From contig NW_002060945.1 of assembly GCF_000150275.1 (NCBI RefSeq), forward strand, positions 4,389,397-4,453,396: a stretch of DNA of 64,000 nucleotides, read 5' to 3'. The position numbers and the translations under genes are program-made. The notes beneath the pieces were generated by a model. That model made no database searches, had not been told where the DNA came from, and saw only the letters and a list, made by a program, of their open reading frames with translations. The stretch comes from Trichoplax adhaerens (lineage: Eukaryota; Animalia; Placozoa). Shown here piece by piece: positions 26,450 to 60,600 of this stretch; the stretch's first letter is position 1; every line of letters starts with the position of its first letter.

Positions 26450-38063
<11,614 letters not shown>

Positions 38064-42340: not shown

Positions 42341-45300
42341 GGCGATGATTTGGGTAAGTAAACAAATAGAACAATTAACCTACGAAGTACCTGGCACTTA
42401 TGCTTTTAAATATATTTCTAATAAGAAGATCCACTACTATATCTTGTAGTTTATCCAATTTAAAATCCTGCATTGACTTTGTCTAATCTTAATCCCAATT
42501 TACAGTCAATAATATTGCTTTCTTATAAGCAGACAATTTCGTGCCTTTCAATTACATAAATAATATTTTTCCCTATAGATTTTTGTTTATACGAAAGTAT
42601 TAAATAGCCGTAAAAATAGGCTTACATTACACAATGTCCCTACTAAACTGTAATTGATTTATTACATCCGCAGAATACCTAGTCATCTATTAATTATTTG
42701 AANNNNNNNNNNNNNNNNNNNNNNNNNNNNNNNNNNNNNNNNNNNNNNNNNNATACATAAGATTGTCGCTATAGTAATTCTCGTATGTACCATCAATTCT
42801 AATCTTAATTAATAGTTTATAACATATTCGCTATGGTGAAATATTTCTNTGCATTGTCGTTAAACGCCATCCTTCGATAAAATATAATCAGTTTTTCGTG
42901 TTATCATTGATTAAGATTACTGATTTACAGGCTGATTAAAATTTTCTTGTATCATTAATACGGTAATCTGAGTATGTACGTAATGAAAGCTTAAGGCATA
43001 ACATTCATGTACCTGTGCATGTATTCTTTTTTCACTAAAATCGATGTTACGGTTTAATTGCAAAGCCATTTAAGTTACCCATAGAATATTAATGTATAGA
43101 TAGCTAGCAAAGACCCTAGTAAGTTTTCTTTCTCACTCTTACCCTTACTCAGTGCATTTAATAAAGGACAGTAATAATGTATTCGTAAAATGACTAGCCA
43201 AGAGAGTTTATAGTTGATCGTATGCCAAAGTCAACGTGCCTAGCCTAACGATAACTATGAACTATTATATATTTGACAAATTATTAATCTATAATCTCTT
43301 AGAGAGTAGTACTTATATCGACGCGGAATCATCATAGCAATAAAATTCGATATCATATAATGCTTTAAATTTACTTGTGCAATAATCGACGCACTGTATA
43401 TGTCAACGAAGTCGTATTAGAGTTCTGAAAAATCGATTAAAATTTCGAGTAATTGTACTGTGTACAGTATATATCCTTTACTATTTACTTTTATACCTTT
43501 TAAATTAAAATTGCTTATCTACAGTTTATTATAAAATAGAGATGATAGCATATAGCATAAGATTGAAATTAATCGATCTTCATTGAAATAGTATTAAGCG
43601 TTAAACCTTATTCTATATCTGATACGTAGTTCTAGTTTACTTTAATAATTTCTGTGATTGCCTCGTACATACATTATAATCAATCTATGCTTGGATCTTA
43701 AATATGCGATTATAAGAAGATTATAATATATACCGTCGCAGTTAAAAGTTTTATCGTATTATACGCTTTCCATGTATCTAGATTAAACGAAACTATGATA
43801 AATTATATGTGCACAATGTTTCTATCTTTCTTTATAAAAGCGTTGACTATATTGGCAGCTGTTCTAATACTATGATATTAACTTTGAGCACTATAAAACT
43901 TTACCCCGATAGTAAATTCTGAGAAAAGTTTTATAATTACACCAAACTTTTATCAAATTAATTACGATTACATCGTTACTATATTNNNNNNNNNNNNNNN
44001 NNNNNNNNNNNNNNNNNNNNNNNNNNNNNNNNNNNNNNNNNNNNNNNNNNNNNNNNNNNNNNNNNNNNNNNNNNNNNNNNNNNNNNNNNNNNNNNNNNNN
44101 NNNNNNNNNNNNNNNNNNNNNNNNNNNNNNNNNNNNNNNNNNNNNNNNNNNNNNNNNNNNNNNNNNNNNNNNNNNNNNNNNNNNNNNNNNNNNNNNNNNN
44201 NNNNNNNNNNNNNNNNNNNNNNNNNNNNNNNNNNNNNNNNNNNNNNNNNNNNNNNNNNNNNNNNNNNNNNNNNNNNNNNNNNNNNNNNNNNNNNNNNNNN
44301 NNNNNNNNNNNNNNNNNNNNNNNNNNNNNNNNNNNNNNNNNNNNNNNNNNNNNNNNNNNNNNNNNNNNNNNNNNNNNNNNNNNNNNNNNNNNNNNNNNNN
44401 NNNNNNNNNNNNNNNNNNNNNNNNNNNNNNNNNNNNNNNNNNNNNNNNNNNNNNNNNNNNNNNNNNNNGGAAAAGACATGCATTGTTTTATTAGACATTT
44501 ACTATTCTAAGCTACTGTTCCGTAGTAATAAGTAACCAAATCAGAAGTATTTGCTATTTCATCTAATGTGATACGAGTATATCTCCTTAAATCTCCTCTT
44601 TAAGTTATCCATTAAATATCGCATTCTTCAATAGATGTCTGAATACTAATTTTCCACCAGGAGTAATAAATATTAATACTATGAAGTAAAGTATAAGAAT
44701 ATGACTTTGCATTGAATATTATGGACGCTAAACTCGATCTTAATACTGGATAGCTATACTAGATAGCTAATAGGCTATGGTATCATAAATTACTGACAAG
44801 GCTACCAAACTACGGTACATGTATTCATGAAATAATCATAATGTATTGCTTAACCAGTTCGCTATTACCAATAGCACGGTAATTGATATGTTGGGCAACT
44901 TTAACGTAGTAAATAAATAAACAAGTGCCGTAATAAAATGAAAGATAAAAGTCGAATTTTAGCTGATCAGCAGGACCTGAGATTCTATGTGTGTATCTAT
45001 TTTCTTATAAGCGATACGTCATGCCCGGAGAAAATTTAATAAGGTTAATAATGATTTACATTATAATAATAAAAATATCTTTAAAATTTACCGTACAATA
45101 TGCAACAAATCAACTTAATTGCCGTATTAATATTTATTATCTCAGTAATTGAAATGATGACATGATTACAAAATAACGATACTGAGACACGTTCCCCTCA
45201 TGACGTCGAGATGGGTGAACTTTATTAATTGTCCCTGGAAAGCTATAAATACGGTCAATTTACATCCAAAATTTTAATAATTGTCCAAACGATACTAACG

Positions 45301-48300: not shown

Positions 48301-51300
48301 ATAAATAATATTTTTCCCTATAGATTTTTGTTTATACGAAAGTATTAAATAGCCGTAAAAATAGGCTTACATTACACAATGTCCCTACTAAACTGTAATT
48401 GATTTATTACATCCGCAGAATACCTAGTCATCTATTAATTATTTGAATTGATTAATGTCTCTATCAGGGCTACGATAGCAAATAAGATTAGTCTTGCCGA
48501 TAAGTCTGACTTTTGGAGAAGATAAGCTCTGGATAATAGGTTTTTATGTCACAATAATCAGTAATACATAAGATTGTCGCTATAGTAATTCTCGTATGTA
48601 CCATCAATTCTAATCTTAATTAATAGTTTATAACATATTCGCTATGGTGAAATATTTCTTTGCATTGTCGTTAAACGCCATCCTTCGATAAAATATAATC
48701 AGTTTTTCGTGTTATCATTGATTAAGATTACTGATTTACAGGCTGATTAAAATTTTCTTGTATCATTAATACGGTAATCTGAGTATGTACGTAATGAAAG
48801 CTTAAGGCATAACATTCATGTACCTGTGCATGTATTCTTTTTTCACTAAAATCGATGTTANNNNNNNNNNNNNNNNNNNNNNNNNNNNNNNNNNNNNNNN
48901 NNNNNNNNNNAGTGTTTGTATAACATAATCAAGAAACATGTTAATACCAATACTACAGTTAAGTTACACGTGTAACTAGAGTACTACAATATATGCTTAA
49001 TTAATCTGTAATTAAAGCACGGTTGCCGAGACTATCAATGCCAGTAGTTATCCGCAGTTTAAGTGATCTTCTTCTTTTATTAGCTTTCCTCATTTATATA
49101 CTGTATAGATCGCAATAAATACTAACATTCTACAGGGATTACCTGTAATATGTGTTACTGTAACATAGTGTTTCCTGCATGAGCAACGTTCATGTGCTGT
49201 ACACGTAGCACAAAATACAGTATCGTACATGCTAAACGGTAATATGCTATACCCTTAGTTACATAAATAATGATTTTCTCTATAGATTTTTGTTTATGTA
49301 AAAGTATTAAATAACTGTAAAAACAGAGTTATATTATACATCATCTTTACTAAACGGTAATTAATTTATTATCTGCAGGATATTTTGTCATCCACTAATT
49401 ATTTCAACTTATTACACAATATCTCTGTCAGAGCTACGATAGCAAATAAGATTAGTCATGCTGATAGATCTGGCTTTAAGAGGAGAGAAGCTCTAGTTAA
49501 CAGGTCTTGAGGGTTTAATAGTAATCAGTAGTAAATAAGATTGCCGTTATAACAATCTTCGTATACATCATCAGTTTGCTTTACCTACAGAATACCGCTG
49601 TATTAAGAGGTAACAGAGACTCTAACAGGTTTTCTTTCTCATATTCACTTTTTATACTCTTATATATTGCTATATACGAGTATAGTTTATAGTATTGTAT
49701 TTTATGCTGTAGCCTGCAGATAAATACTTTTCTCTATATATGTTGATGTTGTTTCAGTACTGAGATATCGCGCTGTACTGCGATGCAAGTTGCCTTTCCT
49801 AACCCCTTTTCACAAACATTTCAACTTTGAAAAACGATATCTTAAAGCTTAATAAAGCATTCTACTGTAGATAGTTAATTCTTTTACATAGCAGAAACAA
49901 TGCAAAGATTCTTTTTCATGGATTTCTACAGAACAGTTACACTTTTGAAATCCTTCAGAGACAAATTTATGAATATACAATGCAATATAGTATACAAATA
50001 TGGCTGTTGTAGCTAAGAAATTAAATGATAGTATGAATAAATAGGGATATTACCCTAATTTGTATTTAAATGCATGTGTCTATTATACTGTAACGTCTGT
50101 AATATTACTATACTGTAGGCAAGAATATATTTCATAAAATTAAGGAAGTAGCCAACCTGAACTTTAGAAACAGAACAGTCTATACGGATGTCACTATTCG
50201 CGTATTATTAAAATAGAACTATCCAATGTATTTTTTCATGCTAACGAAGGATACGTTATCCTTTTCTTTGTCTAATGTCGATACATTCAAGTACCATTTT
50301 GTTGTAGTACTGCCGTTGTAGTACTGCTGCATTATTTATCTGTTGCTTCTTAATTAGAGCTTACTTAGCGCATTTAATAAAGGACAGTAATAATCTATTC
50401 GTAAAATGACTAGCCAAGAGAGTTTATAGTTGATCGTATGCCAAAGTCAACGTGCCTAGCCTAACGATAACTATGAACTATTATATATTTGACAAATTAT
50501 TAATCTACAATCTCTCAGAGAGTAGTACTTACATCGACGCGGAATCATCATAGCAATAAAATTCGATATCATATAATGCTTTAAATTTACTTGTGCAATA
50601 ATCGACGCACTGTATATGTCAACGAAGTCGTATTAGAGTTCTGAAAAATCGATTAAAATTTCGAGTAATTGTACTGTGTACAGTATATATCCTTTACTAT
50701 TTACTTTTATACCTTTAAAATTAAAATTGCTTATCTACAGTTTATTATAAAATAGAGATGATAACATATAGCATAAGATTGAAATTAATCGATCTTCATT
50801 GAAATAGTATTAAGCGTTAAACCTTATTCTATATCTGATACGTAGTTCTAGTTTACTTTAATAATTTCTGTGATTGCCTCGTACATACATTATAATCAAT
50901 CTATGCTTGGATCTTAAATATGCGATTATAAGAAGATTATAATATATACCGTCGCAGTTAAAAGTTTTATCGTATTATACGCTTTCCGTGTATCTAGATT
51001 AAACGAAACTATGATAAATTATATGTGCACAATGTTTCTATCTTTCTTTATAAAAGCGTTGACTATATTGGCAGCTGTTCTAATACTATGATATTAACTT
51101 TGAGCACTATAAAACTTTACCCCGATAGTAAATTCTGAGAAAAGTTTTCTAATTACACCAAACTTTTATCAAATTAATTACGATTACATCGTTACTATAT
51201 TTATAATCTTCCAATATCAGACATTTCGATTACTAGTTAAGCTTACTCATCATTTTATAACGTTTAAAATTTACGGATACAACTAAATCGACGATAAAAA

Positions 51301-53226
51301 TAAAGGGGAAAGTAATTAATATACCTGTTCCGGTAAATACGAGTATCGTATTCTGTGCCGACTAGGTAACTACAGAAGTAATCCAACAACAGTACAGCTA
51401 TAAATAGTTATAGCATTTAGCTAAACTGTAATATAATAGTAATTACAATATGACATATTTTCGGTATGATCAGCTATTACATATGAATNNNNNNNNNNNN
51501 NNNNNNNNNNNNNNNNNNNNNNNNNNNNNNNNNNNNNNTATTATTAAATTTACCCTTTATTTAACAATGTAACTTTTAAGTATCTATTCCGTACCCTTAT
51601 ATTATATTTCTTGTCAAGAATCGTTCATATAGCATGTTATTTGTAAGCATATCAGTAATCGATTTTCTTTTATTAGTACGTACTCATTATGTTAAAATTA
51701 AATATAGAAATGACATATGTTGGAATCTTAGTTCTAAAAACAGTTATTATGTTTATATCTATAGTCAACATAGGATCTGGAACAGCAATTAAAACAATAA
51801 TAATGAAGTAGCATACACGTGTATTAGATTCTAATCCTAAACTACTTATTAATTATGAAGTAGTCAGGGCTGGTAATCTCAATTAACGGCGATAATTATA
51901 GTGTCCATGTCAGCTGAGATTCTGAAATTGTACTTGAGGCTATAGCGAATACAGTATATTTCATATTCTAGACCCAAAACTAATTTTCAACTTGAAATAG
52001 ATAATTTCAGTCAGTAGAGGTAATCTTACGAGTTCGGATAGTCAAACAGAGGGTCTAGTATCGAGATTAAACTTCATAATCGTACTCGTACACGTACAAC
52101 TGTAGACATTAATATAGTGAACGATTTAACTATTACGTAGTACTGCAACAACGCAATTAACAGTAAGTAGAGATATGTCGTATAGTAATTTGATGTAATG
52201 CATTGTTAACAGAATAGGCTTTCCCCTATGCTGATTCAATCATGTTTAAATCAGCTTTCAAATTTTAAATTTCTCTGCTTATTTCTAAATATAGTGCGGT
52301 AAATCTTTGAAGTCATTAGTTCACATTAAGAGTAAATTAATCGAATGACTTCTTAAGTAGCATAATGAGGACTGAGTCGGAATTGTCTAAATGTAAAATA
52401 TACTGATCGAATATGTGGTTCGACTTACTAGTGGCAAACGTACAGCCACATGTACAAGATCGATTAATTAAAGGTTGGTTAGAGTGGGGAGGAAGGAAAA
52501 GACATGCATTGTTTTATTAGACATTTACTATCCTAAGCTACTGTTCCGTAGTAATAAGTAACCAAATCAGAAGTATTTGCTATTTCATCTAATGTGATAC
52601 GAGTATATCTCCTTAAATCTCCTCTTTAAGTTATCCATTAAATATCGCATTCTTCAATAGATATCTGAATACTAATTTTCCACCAGGAGTAATAAATATT
52701 AATACTATGAAGTAAAGTATAAGAATATGACTTTACATTGAATATTATGGACGCTAAACTCGATCTTAATACTGGATAGCTATACTAGATAGCTAATAGG
52801 CTATGGTATCATAAATTACTGACAAGGCTACCAAACTACGGTAAATGTATTCATGAAATAATCATAATGTATTGCTTAACCAGTTCGCTATTACCAATAG
52901 CACGGTAATTGATATGTTGGGCAACTTTAACGTAGTAAATAAATAAACAAGTGCCGTAATAAAATGAAAGATAAAAGTCGAATTTTAGCTGATCAGCAGG
53001 ACCTGAGATTCTATGTGTGTATCTATTTTCTTATAAGCGATACGTCATGCCCGGAGAAAATTTAATAAGGTTAATAATGATTTACATTATAATAATAAAA
53101 ATATCTTTAAAATTTACCGTACAATATGCAACAAATCAACTTAATTGCCGTATTAATATTTATTATCTCAGTAATTGAAATGATGACATGATTACAAAAT
53201 AACGATACTGAGACACGTTCCCCTCA

Positions 53227-53275
53227 TGACGTCGAGATGGGTGAACTTTATTAATTGTCCCTGGAAAGCTATAAA
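53227..53275 (+). promoter_or_regulatory. Candidate core promoter (CRE-like TGACGTC plus TATAAA) of the secreted cystine-knot-like gene; duplicate at ~45200-45249
   Basis: tgacgtc at 53227-53233 and tataaa at 53270-53275, about 145 bp upstream of the ATG at 53418. Confidence 0.45.
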
Positions 53276-53417
53276 TACGGTCAATTTACATCCAAAATTT
53301 TAATAATTGTCCAAACGATACTAACGTTATCTGCTCACTAAGCAAACCGTATTACTTTTCCGATCTCTGTCAAGAAATTTTCTATTTACAATACAGAAAT
53401 TTATTGGAATCTCAAAT

Positions 53418-55367
53418 ATGAGTGGATCAAAGCAAAACTTTTCAATTTTAAACGTCGTTTCTCAGCGTACATTTTTGGCTATGATGGTTAGCAAATACTT
53501 AGTAAATTATTTTATACTGTATCGTAAACGATATCACATTAATTTCAATATAAATGTTCAAATTTCGAGAGTAGCCGTAGCACTGTAAACTACATTAAGA
53601 TATCATTTAAGTTGTAATTCCTTTAGCAATTCGCTTATGCAAAAATTTAGACGATATCTAACGTATAATTACTGTCGCTAGAACAAATACTACAATGATA
53701 ATTAATCTAGAAATTAATAATATATCGTTTCCTGTCGCTAGAATAAATGCTGTAATAATCATCAATCTAGAAATTAATACATTAGTTTCAGTAGTATTCG
53801 AAAGGCTATAGAAGAGTTTACCGGATGTCAGAATATGATATGGTTAGAATTAAAATATTTGATCGAGAAAGTATATGAGTATAAGAAGCTATTGTAGAGA
53901 TAACTACTCGTATTAGCGTAAGAGTATATTATAGTCCTTTTTGCAGTCCTTGTGATACGAGTACTGATTATATATTATCATATATTCTGTACGGTAATGC
54001 ATCATAGCATGATTCTTCAGTTACAAAGAAAATTTTAGTAAGCTACGTATCAATAGTCCGAATCTACGGTATCCAATCACAATATTTCTTTTCTATAAAA
54101 TCGGTACTTTATATAATTGTAATATTGGGTACATTACAATAGATGATTGGATTTTTAAGTAGTAAATTAAACTAATATAGTTATGTCTTATTTGCGGTAG
54201 TTACGTATTAGAATAAAGTACTATTAATTTATTTTAGGCGTACAGTCAGTAAACACTAATAATAATCTGCACGGTGAAGCGTGCTGAGCAAAGCTAGACT
54301 CGCCCGCGCGCGTTTTTCACGGGTATCACGAGGCTAGTTAAATTAATTAAATCATCATTTATAGAAAGGAAATCAAAATACATATGGTATCGTAGATCTC
54401 CTTACAATACTGCACCGACAGAGAAAACTAGACTATTTATTATGATTTTCTTTAAAAACTGTTTGTTAAGATCGAGAAAAGTCGAAATATCGAATATCAA
54501 GTTAAATCTAATTTCTAGTCTCATCTCTTAATTAAATTTGAATTGATAATCTGGGAGTAATTTTTATATCTTAACTATACAGTATTGCTATAAGTATCGA
54601 TATTATATAGCGAATTACTGGTATTGATACGGTACAGTATTCTCTACGTGTCTAGATAACTACGAGAGAATTGTCGCTTTTTAGTTTAATTAATAGTTAA
54701 TTTGATTCATTAAAAATTACGAGTTGCAAGAGCGAGCACACTTCTATTGCTATCAATGTATATCTAGGCTTGAAAAGATAAGTCTTACAAGCCAGCAGGT
54801 GTCTAAATCCAAAATTAATCTAACCTTACAAATATATCAAATTCTTTTATTATTTAGATGTTTATGCTATCGATCAATCTTTACGGAGTTCTTCACTGCC
54901 ACGGCCGCTCTATTATTATTAAGAGAGATACTCCTGAGATGTTTCCTTTGGAGAATAAATTTATACAACCAGAAGTTTGTATCGATGGCGGAAATATTGC
55001 CAACGACTATCTTCACCAAATTAGACAACAAAATAAGTGTGCAATTATACAAGAAACAAAGTATTTTCGTATTCATTACGATGACTTCGGTTATCCTACA
55101 CCGACTGGATTCATGGCGAAAACTTGCCTTCCTATTAACTGCGGAGATACTGAAGACGTCAGCAAAAATTGCAGAAACTATGTTAACATGACCAGTCATC
55201 CTCTTTATATCCGTTATTCAGATAATCAGGTTGGAGTAACGCAATATCTTAGTGTCGCCAATTGTATAATACCGCCAACAAATAAAACTGTTATATTTGG
55301 TACTTTACAATCTAACAAGACGATCGAATTTCTCGATAATGAAGTTAATACTATAAATACTTGGTAA
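53418..55367 (+). CDS. Secreted Cys-rich protein with divergent TGF-beta/cystine-knot-like domain, 2 exons (53418-53486, 54858-55367), ~192 aa
   Basis: Exon 1 MSGSKQNFSILNVVSQRTFLAMM|gttagc joins in phase 0 to ttatttag|MFMLSINLYGVLHCHG, giving a signal-peptide-like N-terminus. RSIIIKR dibasic site follows, then six Cys, with C..FRIHYDDFGYPTPTGFMAKTC resembling the TGF-beta finger 1 pattern. Exon 1 is less certain than exon 2. Confidence 0.65.
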
Positions 55368-55836
55368 CTCAACACAATTTATTGTAATAATAATAATCAC
55401 GATATACGAATATATCGAAGATAACAAGATGGTTATCTGTCATATTTATACCTCAAATTTCGATTATTTCGAGTAATTATAAAGTATTTACGTAATGTTC
55501 TTCACGAGGATAATATTAAGTATGAGATTTTATCTCAGTACTACATTACTAATCTAAGATATTATGCAACTACTAAATTATATTACTATCATCAACTAAT
55601 TATTAATCAACTAATTATTAAGCTGCAAATGATAATTTAAATTAATCGAATCGAATAATGAAGTAGAAGTTAATTTTACTATTCTATTTGAACAATTCAT
55701 TGGGCTATTTATATAGTTTATTAAGTACCCAAAGTGAATCCATAAATACAGTATTATTGTAGTCGAATACATATACTGTATTACGTATTACTGAATATTC
55801 TATAAGGTAATCGATAGTAAAATGTATTCCTTTTAA

Positions 55837-56078
55837 AGTACTTATTTTGGAGATATATTTATTGACGGTGTGTTGATAATGGAATTAGAAATCTATTGTT
55901 ACTCAATATTTTTACCCTATTTATGTTGCACTATATATCTCGCACATCTAGCTTTTACAGTACTTATTTTGGAGATATATTTATTGACGGTGTGTTGATG
56001 ATGGAATTAGAAATCTATTGTTACTCAATATTTTTACCCTGTTTATGTTGTACTATGTATCTCGCACATCTAGCTCTT
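55837..56078. repeat. Tandem duplication, ~121 bp x 2
   Basis: agtacttattttggagatatatttattgacggtgtgttgat...ctcgcacatctagct occurs at ~55838 and ~55959. Confidence 0.92.
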
Positions 56079-57149
56079 TTGTATTACTAATAAATTTATA
56101 TTTTACATAATATTACACTTGTCTATCTAAGTGATTTAAATCGTTTAGCGGTTCAACCGATAGAGTAGATATTATTTACGATCGCGTCTTAAGATGTAGA
56201 TGATATGGATCATATCGAGTAATGCACCCACCTATTTAAGTGTTGAAATTACAGTAAACACGAATAAACAAGCTAACACATGCAGTACTATATGCTTAAT
56301 TAATCTTGAATAAGAATACGGTTGGCCAGACTATCGATGCTAGTAATTATATTAAGCGTAATATAAGTGATCTTCTTATTTTATTAGCTTTCCTCATTTA
56401 TACACCGTACAGATCTCAATAAATACTAGCATTCTACAGGGAATAGAGCGTTAGCATTAAGAGCTACATCAAAAATCCATACTAAAACCCTTTATTAAGC
56501 ATAGAAATACGTACTTTCCCAAAACTTTTATTGCATTTACAGCTGGATACTTTCATTTTAGAGGTAGGAAACATTACAAGTAAACGTATTGAAAGTTTTC
56601 TTGAAAGCCCGTAGAGTACATTACATTCGAAGCTATTTAATTTCATCTACCATTTTTTCCTGAAAACGACTTAAAAGCTGATGATACGGGTTAAATTATG
56701 TTGAGCCGTTTCAGCTAACTTGAATGCACTACTAATAAATTAAAAAAATTATTAATGGGTATACTACAGGTAACTTTTATATTCATGAAACTAAAATATT
56801 AAAGCTGAAGTCTATAACATAACAACATTTGGTCAGCATACGTACGATATACCTTAGGGATATAACATTCCGAAGTTAAGCATTTATCCTTATGCAGCGA
56901 TGGGTACTAGTTTGTGTTACTCGTATATTGCTAAATTTATTATAAAGAGAGTATTGGAGTAGTCCAAAAATCTTGACCGGCTTTCTCAATGCTGAGGTAA
57001 GCGTACAGTAGGCAGCGTGACAAAGGACAGAGGTAGTGTGAGCTCTCTTACGCATAGTACTGCTGGCTAAGAAATATTACAATCAGCTACAGTAATGCAA
57101 GTGCTTCCCATTACTTCCCATCTCTACATTTTCATTGGCAAAATTGCAC

Positions 57150-57666: not shown

Positions 57667-60600
57667 ATGCAAGACTTTGATGTCGATGCGGATCAGTTAA
57701 GGAAGCAGATTTTAACCATCAAGGAAGCAATATTCGATCGTGGAAAGTTATTGACATTGTATCAAGAGAAATGCAATCAAGTTCAAGCTATTCGAAAAGA
57801 ATTAATCGATGATGCTGCAACACAACAGCGATTAATAAGTGAATTGAAGAACAGTCAGTCATTACAACCAAAGTTAACACATGCAGAAGAAACGATACAA
57901 CAGTTGCAAGAGGACAAACGACAATTGACATCTTTGCTTGAACAGCAACAAAATGCAACTGCAGCTAGCCAAAAATATGCAGAACAATTACGCTTAGTCA
58001 TTACAGAAAATGAATCCGCTAGATTCAACCTAAAGTCGGAAAGCAGTAACTTGAAAAATAATATTGACAAATGGAAAGTAGAAGATAAAAAAAATAAAGA
58101 AAAAATTGAAAAATACGCCAGTAAAATTGAATATTTAACTAAATTTAATAAAGGTTCGTTGAATAGCCTGACATTTTAAAAATGGATTATTTCAAGCCTA
58201 TAGGCTGTACATAAGTGACTGTGACATAATGCTAAAATTAGTGTAGTATTCAATCAATAGATGAATAGACAAGTACACTGTACATTTAGCCGAGCACCAT
58301 TTCTCTTTTGATAATGTATAATTACAATATAATTTATTTCTACGATATTATAATACTCGTAAGCATAGTAAAATAATTACATCAAAATTTATATTTCAAT
58401 TTATTTACATATGACGTAGTCTTGAAAGAAGAGAAGCAACAGCAAGCTAAGAAAATTAAAGAACTAGAGAAAGAACTTTCCAGGCTAGAAAAATCATCTG
58501 CAAACTATAACAATAATAGCAGTAGGAAGAGGCAGCATAAAAGGAATAGCGTCTCTGTTACCAAATGCCACAAATTAGGCAGTCCTAATTTGGTTAATGA
58601 TAAAGTATCGGATGTACCAGAACCTGAAATTGGCGACTTTACATCATCAGATTCTGATTCTTCTGCAGAGTCTAGAATTGAAAAAGCCTTGGCTGATCCT
58701 TCGCAGCAATACTCCGGTGAACAGACATTGAACAGTCCTTGCAAATCAAATAAAGAGGAAGGAGAAATTTCGGACGCTACAGAGGATGGATCACAAAGTG
58801 GTCTCGTTGAAGGTCAAAACCATCATATAGAATATGACAACAACGAAATAGACATGGATAATGATCTCGCATCATTTGATCAAACCAAATCCATTGAATT
58901 TCCGATACGAAAAGACTCTCCTAAATATATTGCCAACCAAGAAAGTGAACAACACGACATTAAGCAAGATTCAGAGCCATGCACTGTTCGGCATAATCAC
59001 CGTAAACTATTGACCGATACTAAACATTCTCGTAGACAAAAGCTAACCCGGAGTTGTAAACCAGTTGCAAAGCTGCCAAGTGCTAATCAAATAATTGATT
59101 CACTGCCTAATCAAATCACTGATACCTCATCAAGTGCTGCTGGAGTCGATATCATCGATAAAAATAAAAAAGATCAAACGAATGATCAGAATACGAAACT
59201 GGTAGGAGATCATGGGTTAAAAAGAAAAAGAGTAGATAAGACTGCTATCGATAAATCACCTAGCAAAATTTTTTCTAACACCAATATAATAGCTGATGCA
59301 ACACCACCAGTGCCATTAGCGTATCATAAGAATGAAAATTATACGGATATTTTAATGAAGGTGCAAGAAGAGATTGATACAATTGATAATCTTGCATTAT
59401 CACCGCTATCATTTAATTCTGATCGTGAAGATGATCGCACTGCAAGAGTCTTACAAGATTTTTCAGAATTCTGTTCTGTAATCCTTGACGATACTATCTC
59501 ACCCATTTCTTCATCATCCAATGAAGAATATCAGGACGGTAACCGAGCAAACTTAGACGCTTGTTCAAACAAGGATCATGCTCAACAAACAAGTAAAATT
59601 CATGGCAATTTCAACGTAGATGCAACTAACACCATAGACACTGATGACACTTGTATCAGTAAGGAAGTAGGTTTATCTTCGCTAATTTAATTGAATTATT
59701 TATATCATAATACTATATTAAAATATTATTAAGTTTTTCATCGAAATCGATTGCAGGTGTCTTAATAAGAGACCTTACGGAGATTTTATTCGTAGTATTA
59801 ATAACAAGATTCTTTACTTCGTGTATATATTTAGAATGCGAATGATATAGATAAAGGAACGAATGTAACAAAAGTAGCTAAATTTATAGGAGTATGCCAA
59901 CAATCAAGAAACTCTTCAGAATCCTCCGAGAGTGATAAACCAAATCGCACTAAACCTGCTTTGCCTAATGAAAATGAACAAATAAACAAAACACCACAGC
60001 AACGAAAAAAAAATTTGAAAAATACACGTACGAGTGTAATAGAATACAATAATAATAGTATTATTAATTTTGTATCCTATCTTTTCATCATTTTCTAAAA
60101 ATTGTGTGGCTATGCTACTTCAATTAACTTTTATAGGCTATAATACTAGACAGCGAACCCGTTATAAAGACACCGACAATGTAGTAAAGTCTTCATCTCA
60201 TCGCAGTACTAGAATGAACATTAAATCGAATAAACGACAAGTCATAAGTTGCAAGGATCACGAGTCTTCTGATAGTGAAGACGATTTCCAGCCAAAATAT
60301 TGGAATGACTTATTTTTAGCTCTATACAGTAACAGAGTATCTGTCAGCGCAATAACTGAAAGAATGATACATGATAATGTTTCAACAACTAGGATGGTTT
60401 ATGTCCTTTTATCAAATTTACCGTCGCTTCTTGATTCAAAAACTGATAGCGAACTGGACCCACTTGAACATTTAATTAACGATGATTACTCTAAATCTAT
60501 TTTATGTGCACAAGAAAATCGATTTGTTGATGCTGTAATCAAGCTTGAAAGCAAATATGTAAGTCCAGATTAACATTTACTGCGGCTTTTAAAATCTGTG

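Follow-up and report, generated by a model that had tools for sequence, protein, structure and literature searches.

What kind of protein does a small, unstudied gene of Trichoplax adhaerens make, and could that protein be a signal? The gene, TRIADDRAFT_54497, lies in the 64,000-nucleotide stretch of contig NW_002060945.1 that we analysed (positions 4,389,397 to 4,453,396; hereafter the window). The original prediction, made from the letters alone, had taken its product for a secreted, prodomain-less protein with a rewired TGF-beta-like cystine pattern and hence for a candidate signalling ligand. Having no neurons, placozoans rely on secreted peptides and proteins to coordinate their behaviour and pattern their bodies, and their genomes encode many orphan receptors. 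The reading we favour, without pressing it, is that the gene's product is a small secreted glycoprotein from an orphan family, ligand-like, trimmed by a convertase and built on a cystine-knot-like scaffold that belongs to no known family; we regard this proposal as evenly poised. Membership in the TGF-beta family, however, is very improbable.

The locus is a genuine two-exon T. adhaerens gene, annotated but unstudied. The translations of its two exons exactly match a database protein of 192 amino acids (TRIADDRAFT_54497, XP_002110462.1, B3RS74; record P0010), with exon 1 supplying residues 1-23 and exon 2 residues 24-192, and the junction proposed at 53486/54858 is that of the annotated gene model. 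Full-length searches used records P0001 and P0010 as queries and all other searches used the exon-2 product, whose numbering we follow for cysteines, the KR site and N-glycosylation sequons unless the 192-residue record is named. Searches of the organism's own genome covered an assembly of 105.6 Mb in 1414 contigs.

Translation and the database match bear out the predicted layout of a signal peptide, a KR site, a mature region of about 146 amino acids, six cysteines and three sequons. The hydrophobic peak crosses the exon junction (residues 18-31 of the 192-residue record), and by the -3/-1 rule the signal peptide would be cleaved after Gly16. The KR at residues 22-23 is the sole dibasic site of the protein and a candidate point of convertase cleavage; the propeptide of the window protein is thus as short as had been proposed, about seven residues. 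The six mature cysteines fall at residues 41, 61, 90, 95, 105 and 136 (the signal peptide holds a seventh) and the sequons at 110 (NMT), 142 (NKT) and 153 (NKT). Between C61 and C90 lie 28 residues, between Cys95 and Cys105 nine, and between C105 and C136 30. Because the cysteine count is even, there is probably no covalent dimer link.

The resemblance to TGF-beta that prompted the original prediction lies in spacing and in one short motif. Finger lengths of 28 and 30 residues do match the 28 and 31 of Trichoplax BMP-like domains (other cystine-knot growth factors, too, have fingers of comparable length), and P-x-G-F-x-A-x-x-C mimics P-x-x-[FY]-x-A-x-x-C. The TGF-beta template itself found no support. 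In Pfam searches with hmmscan at E<=10, the window protein matched no family and none of the five family members described below matched TGF_beta (PF00019); a match of one member to RGS_DHEX (E 0.033) was taken as chance. Yet PF00019 does recover five genuine ligand genes from this genome, at 76-124 bits (E 1e-19 to 1e-34), each with a long open frame for its prodomain. The expectation that TGF-beta surveys would miss this gene, which carries no family annotation, proved correct. When the mature domains of the five Trichoplax ligands were aligned and compared with the family profile to profile (hhalign), the probability was 0.26% (E 0.23), and the aligned part was 12 columns only, those of the P-x-G-F-x-A-x-x-C stretch. 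Even this stretch is only partly kept within the family. Every lineage has the Phe, but Pro and Gly are confined to the window protein, P0002 and P0003, three lineages of five; P-x-G is missing from the branch of the window gene's paralogue, and where the window protein has Ala, all four other lineages have Cys.

The defining features of the TGF-beta fold fare no better. CxGxC and the C-terminal CxC are invariant in Trichoplax's own ligands, whereas this family has C-L-P-I-N-C, with four residues and no Gly between the cysteines, in place of the former and lacks the latter throughout, with a single Cys in the window protein and CxxxC in its relatives. The window protein has no interchain CC pair; no wrist helix lies between Cys95 and Cys105 in its predicted model, and the paralogue has a 4-residue turn only; and a large latency prodomain ending in RXXR is absent. 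What the window protein shares with TGF-beta and BMP ligands is that it is apparently secreted, is probably cleaved at basic residues and carries one short motif before the second Cys, but it fails every defining sequence feature tested. These tests largely refute the reading of it as a divergent, prodomain-less member that would act on TGF-beta receptors as a monomer, whether as ligand or as antagonist.

Other families left equally little trace. The window protein gave no hmmscan match to DAN (PF03045), PDGF/VEGF (PF00341) or IL-17 (PF06083). Genome searches recovered three DAN genes above the cut-off, at other loci, and nothing with PF00341 or PF06083; against the genome's DAN domains, the family reached an hhalign probability of 0.12%. 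A PDB sequence search returned hexon noise only (E 0.4) with the single sequence and no match with the family profile. None of these searches detects a sequence tie with TGF-beta or with any other family in Pfam or the PDB.

The protein does have relatives. An exhaustive phmmer search of 1.84 billion representatives found four true ones, P0002, P0003, P0004 and P0006; two further matches, P0005 and P0007, were rejected as compositional artefacts, being long low-complexity repeat proteins. BLASTP against 1.8 billion proteins gave E 1e-17 for the paralogue and 1e-9 to 1e-11 for the others. The T. adhaerens genome holds one distant paralogue, on another contig (28% identity, E 1e-17), of which P0004 is the copy in Trichoplax sp. 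H2, where the paralogue's gene is TrispH2_007237; the search for paralogues and orthologues yielded one own-genome paralogue and three further relatives. The sources are Logan assemblies of runs SRR30664515-17 for P0002 and P0006 and a metagenome of marine biofilm for P0003 (sample SAMN08714533, which PMC6355793 cites). The DNA of the Logan contigs gave no match to the Trichoplax genome, a profile word search found no further family members, and a scan of JGI metagenomes with the CLPINC pattern found no relatives. A placozoan origin of P0002, P0003 and P0006 is plausible, because placozoans graze on marine biofilms. On present sequences the family is orphan, tiny and fast-evolving, so far seen only in placozoans and placozoan-like environmental DNA.

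Across five lineages that are 21-40% identical, six cysteines are invariant and the motif C-[LYR]-P-[IV]-N-C is shared by all. The gene structure is shared as well: a phase-0 acceptor followed by a hydrophobic stretch lies at the same place, inside the signal peptide, in all five lineages, and in all four relatives that stretch lacks a start codon, which requires an upstream exon and thereby supports the two-exon model of the window gene. The original prediction had proposed that an extra N-terminal Cys pairs with an orphan third Cys; both prove invariant in the family and could pair. It had also noted the absence of the last C-terminal Cys (C7) of the TGF-beta template, and here the comparison tells a different story: what the window protein has lost is the family's fourth Cys pair. 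At columns 87 and 132, four of five lineages have Cys, kept as CxxC...CxxxC, where the window protein has Ala87 and Ser132; as both positions have changed there together, the two cysteines are most likely bonded to each other in the relatives. The T. adhaerens paralogue has one further Cys pair. Nor is the lack of a prodomain, true of the window protein, a family trait: P0002 and P0003 have pro-regions of 30-90 amino acids that end in a furin-type RSKR, directly followed by a ninth, odd Cys, and these pro-regions gave no Pfam match to latency-associated peptide (LAP/TGFb_propeptide). From cleavage motif to first invariant Cys there are 17 residues after KR in the window protein and 20 after RSKR in the two relatives.

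Elsewhere in the T. adhaerens genome, two stop-interrupted stretches resemble the family core F-x-C-L-x-C-x-x-x-N-C: L005:1507-1650 (G000:C1411:7692825-7692923) and L006:1507-1605 on the minus strand (G000:C1396:1230490-1230576). Both match P0002/P0003 best (pairwise E 1e-4 to 1e-5, genome-wide E 0.2-0.6) and may be pseudogene relics of a third subfamily otherwise absent from T. adhaerens, or chance.

These comparisons also bear on whether the gene does anything at all. An open frame that is decaying or was never expressed, and that annotation pipelines have simply passed on, would fit the loss of a Cys pair that the relatives keep, and no transcript or literature record of the gene was reached; a search of papers and supplements found no mention of its identifiers. 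The window and the main H2 contig (L017) are colinear and 99.6% identical, and over 8.5 kb H1 and H2 differ equally little in exons and introns (99.6% identity), too little to show purifying selection. Yet the cysteines were lost as a pair, leaving an even count, and the six others and the CLPINC motif are invariant across five lineages at 21-31% identity. Moreover, the 169-codon frame is intact in AT-rich DNA of 30% G+C, where such a frame is improbable by chance; the intron position and splice signals are preserved; and two strains, annotated independently, were given the same gene model, TrispH2_011962 of Trichoplax sp. H2 being 100% identical to exon 2 in a protein word search and falling in one cluster with TRIADDRAFT_54497. 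We consider a non-functional gene highly improbable.

We ran AlphaFold2 separately on the mature window protein (model mcf91c666b7e2; predicted local distance difference test (pLDDT) 73.9, predicted template modelling score (pTM) 0.67) and on the paralogue (pLDDT 80.6, pTM 0.71), in each case from one alignment of the five family sequences. The two runs agree in topology: after a short strand and a helix come two long hairpins with a short link between them, and two short strands follow at the C-terminus. The predicted hairpins comprise strands 37-48/61-70 and 86-98/101-113 in the window protein, where the link is 9 residues, and 45-59/65-78 and 94-105/110-122 in the paralogue. In both models, two antiparallel beta-hairpin fingers rise from a Cys-rich base, with the conserved cysteines at strand ends and clustered there. 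The pair of cysteines specific to the paralogue falls in its two predicted fingertip loops, which fits fingers lying side by side.

In a Foldseek-independent VIA-align scan of 48,161 chains, matches were weak only, but the only PDB neighbours of the models that recur are cystine-knot growth factors. These make up about half of the neighbours in the two models and align in the linear order of the conserved cysteines, a pattern that recurs on re-aligning Foldseek's top 1000 chains. DAN, Norrin and IL-17 score above TGF-beta chains, a further point against the TGF-beta assignment. The models thus suggest an architecture closest, weakly, to cystine-knot growth factors: the two-finger shape foreseen in the original prediction appears in them, with its two long hairpins and cystine-knot neighbours, and the resemblance is a distant one. 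Two results from the ESM Atlas were set aside, a match to CfaA_B_C whose score of 0.79 is at chance level by the tool's own calibration, and a paralogue model of pLDDT 0.40.

Several observations weigh against our interpretation. Foldseek against the PDB gave template modelling (TM) scores < 0.25 for both models, mostly Nudix noise. For the paralogue model, Hsp40 C-terminal domains score level with Gremlin, and the alignments behind the models hold five sequences only. No CxC motif occurs anywhere in the family, and pairings that form no knot, for example C41-C61 and C95-C105, are equally possible. Finally, the signalling role is read from architecture and processing sites only.

These points feed the main rival, in which the protein is a secreted, lineage-specific effector with no part in signalling (in defence, as a toxin, in digestion or in an adhesive granule) and its growth-factor likeness is that of generic disulfide-stapled hairpins. 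A tiny, restricted family diverging this fast is typical of defence and secretory-granule proteins, and the sequence matches no known ligand family. Generic hairpins, however, sit less easily with neighbours that are about half cystine-knot growth factors and preserve the order of the conserved cysteines, and furin-type processing at RSKR, as in the pro-regions of relatives, is characteristic of hormones and growth factors, if not exclusive to them. We rate an effector as possible, though on the unlikely side.

Among known systems, the closest include the DAN-family BMP antagonists (Gremlin-1, 5AEJ; NBL1, 4X1J) and Norrin (5BPU, 9KHH), from which the window protein differs in lacking a PF03045 match, CxGxC and CxC. 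The PDGF/VEGF family is similar in its N-terminal helix directly before finger 1, its short heel between the fingers and its order of cysteines (C...CxxC...C...CxxxC in this family, C...CxxCC...C...CxC in VEGF), and VEGF-A, -B and -C and PDGF-B align to model residues 25-119, helix included. Unlike these proteins, the window protein gives no PF00341 signal and lacks the interchain Cys, and the ring that the family might form would be 9-membered rather than 8-membered and would be absent from the window protein. IL-17 differs in that PF06083 has no match here, the Cys spacings are not the same, and IL-17 keeps a C-terminal CxC.

Under the reading we favour, the precursor would enter the endoplasmic reticulum and shed its signal peptide, and a proprotein convertase (PC-type) would trim it after KR, as it would the relatives at RSKR after a longer pro-region. 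Three disulfides would staple the hairpin base, the protein would be N-glycosylated, and it would act outside the cell as a soluble ligand or a ligand-binding modulator. A bolder version concerns the ring. The four relatives of the 8-Cys type could, judging by their cysteine spacing, close a 9-membered ring from CxxC and CxxxC, and the window protein would lack one of the two candidate ring bonds because of Ala87 and Ser132. Should the relatives' ring prove a true knot, the window protein would be a member without one, like the IL-17 cytokines. The family would then be an unrecognised, placozoan-specific, convertase-processed cystine-knot branch, its 9-membered ring threaded by C61-C105, with TRIADDRAFT_54497 as a knot-less member that parallels IL-17 and could be the ligand of an orphan placozoan receptor. 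Taken as a whole, this fuller scenario seems to us unlikely, and a little more so than an effector.

Features of the TRIADDRAFT_54497 locus, in window coordinates
Feature	Position	Strand	Evidence or remark
Exon 1: start codon, n-region and first part of signal peptide	53418..53486	+	23 codons; donor GTTAGC; also in Trichoplax sp. H2 models (P0001)
Phase-0 intron, 1371 nt, within the signal-peptide coding region	53487..54857	+	GT...AG borders
Exon 2	54858..55367	+	169 codons plus stop; acceptor after T-rich tract
Second part of signal peptide, exon-2 residues 1-16, ending HCHG	54858..54905	+	hydropathy maximum; cleavage site inferred
Propeptide of seven residues ending KR, a candidate proprotein-convertase site	54906..54926	+	cleavage inferred
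Mature domain, 146 amino acids, six Cys, three N-glycosylation sequons	54927..55364	+	translation; AlphaFold2 model mcf91c666b7e2
Predicted two-finger core, mature residues about 35-118, the part aligning with cystine-knot growth factors	55029..55280	+	
C-L-P-I-N-C-G-D, best-conserved family motif, with Cys90 and Cys95	55125..55148	+	C90, P92, N94 and C95 invariant in 5/5 lineages
Stop codon TAA	55365..55367	+	

The H2 strain carries a second, rearranged copy of the locus on contig NOWV01000498.1 (L016; 11.6 kb), which we compared with window positions 48911-56281. In order, it holds an 86%-identical copy of the exon-1 region, a shorter intron, a 99%-identical exon 2 and then sequence from upstream in the window, with a second exon 1 (partial model P0009) at the contig end. 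A segmental duplication, a divergent haplotype or a misassembly could each account for this copy. Exon 1 of the 86%-identical duplicate has 4 differences in 69 nucleotides (2 of them synonymous), giving a selection signal no clearer than in the flanks. A possible TATA box, TATAAATA, lies at 53270-53277, 141 nucleotides 5' of the start codon, and is partly retained as TATAAGTA in this duplicate.

Within the intron, a G+C-richer dispersed repeat (54230-54400) has at least 4 further genome copies, on other contigs, at 78-81% identity; an Rfam search of the locus, this repeat included, gave no match. About 460 nucleotides 3' of the stop codon, a 122-bp unit occurs in two tandem copies with 95% match (55830-56075), and its copies cross-match in H2 contigs. 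The downstream neighbour (57667-60573, plus strand) consists of long open frames with coiled-coil and Ser/Asp-rich segments, which the H2 annotation fuses into a product of at least 1125 amino acids, cut off at the edge of the locus; a weak match to ICE1_C (PF25817) suggests a little-elongation-complex subunit. Upstream, a gene-poor stretch contains an assembly gap (a run of N at 43990-44480), and the nearest coding signal is a kinase-like open reading frame on the minus strand (37671-38063).

What the finding would mean depends on which reading holds. If the resemblance is superficial, the family is another fast-evolving secretory protein. If it is genuine, a growth-factor-shaped, convertase-processed family would add to placozoan biology a set of candidate ligands invisible to homology surveys built on TGF-beta, DAN or glycoprotein-hormone sequences. 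Should the 8-Cys relatives indeed close a CxxC/CxxxC knot, the sequence rules now accepted for cystine-knot growth factors would have to be broadened, and the window protein would be the second natural case, after IL-17, of a scaffold outlasting its knot. The support is predictive, and the value of the gene lies in offering a well-defined and cheaply testable candidate.
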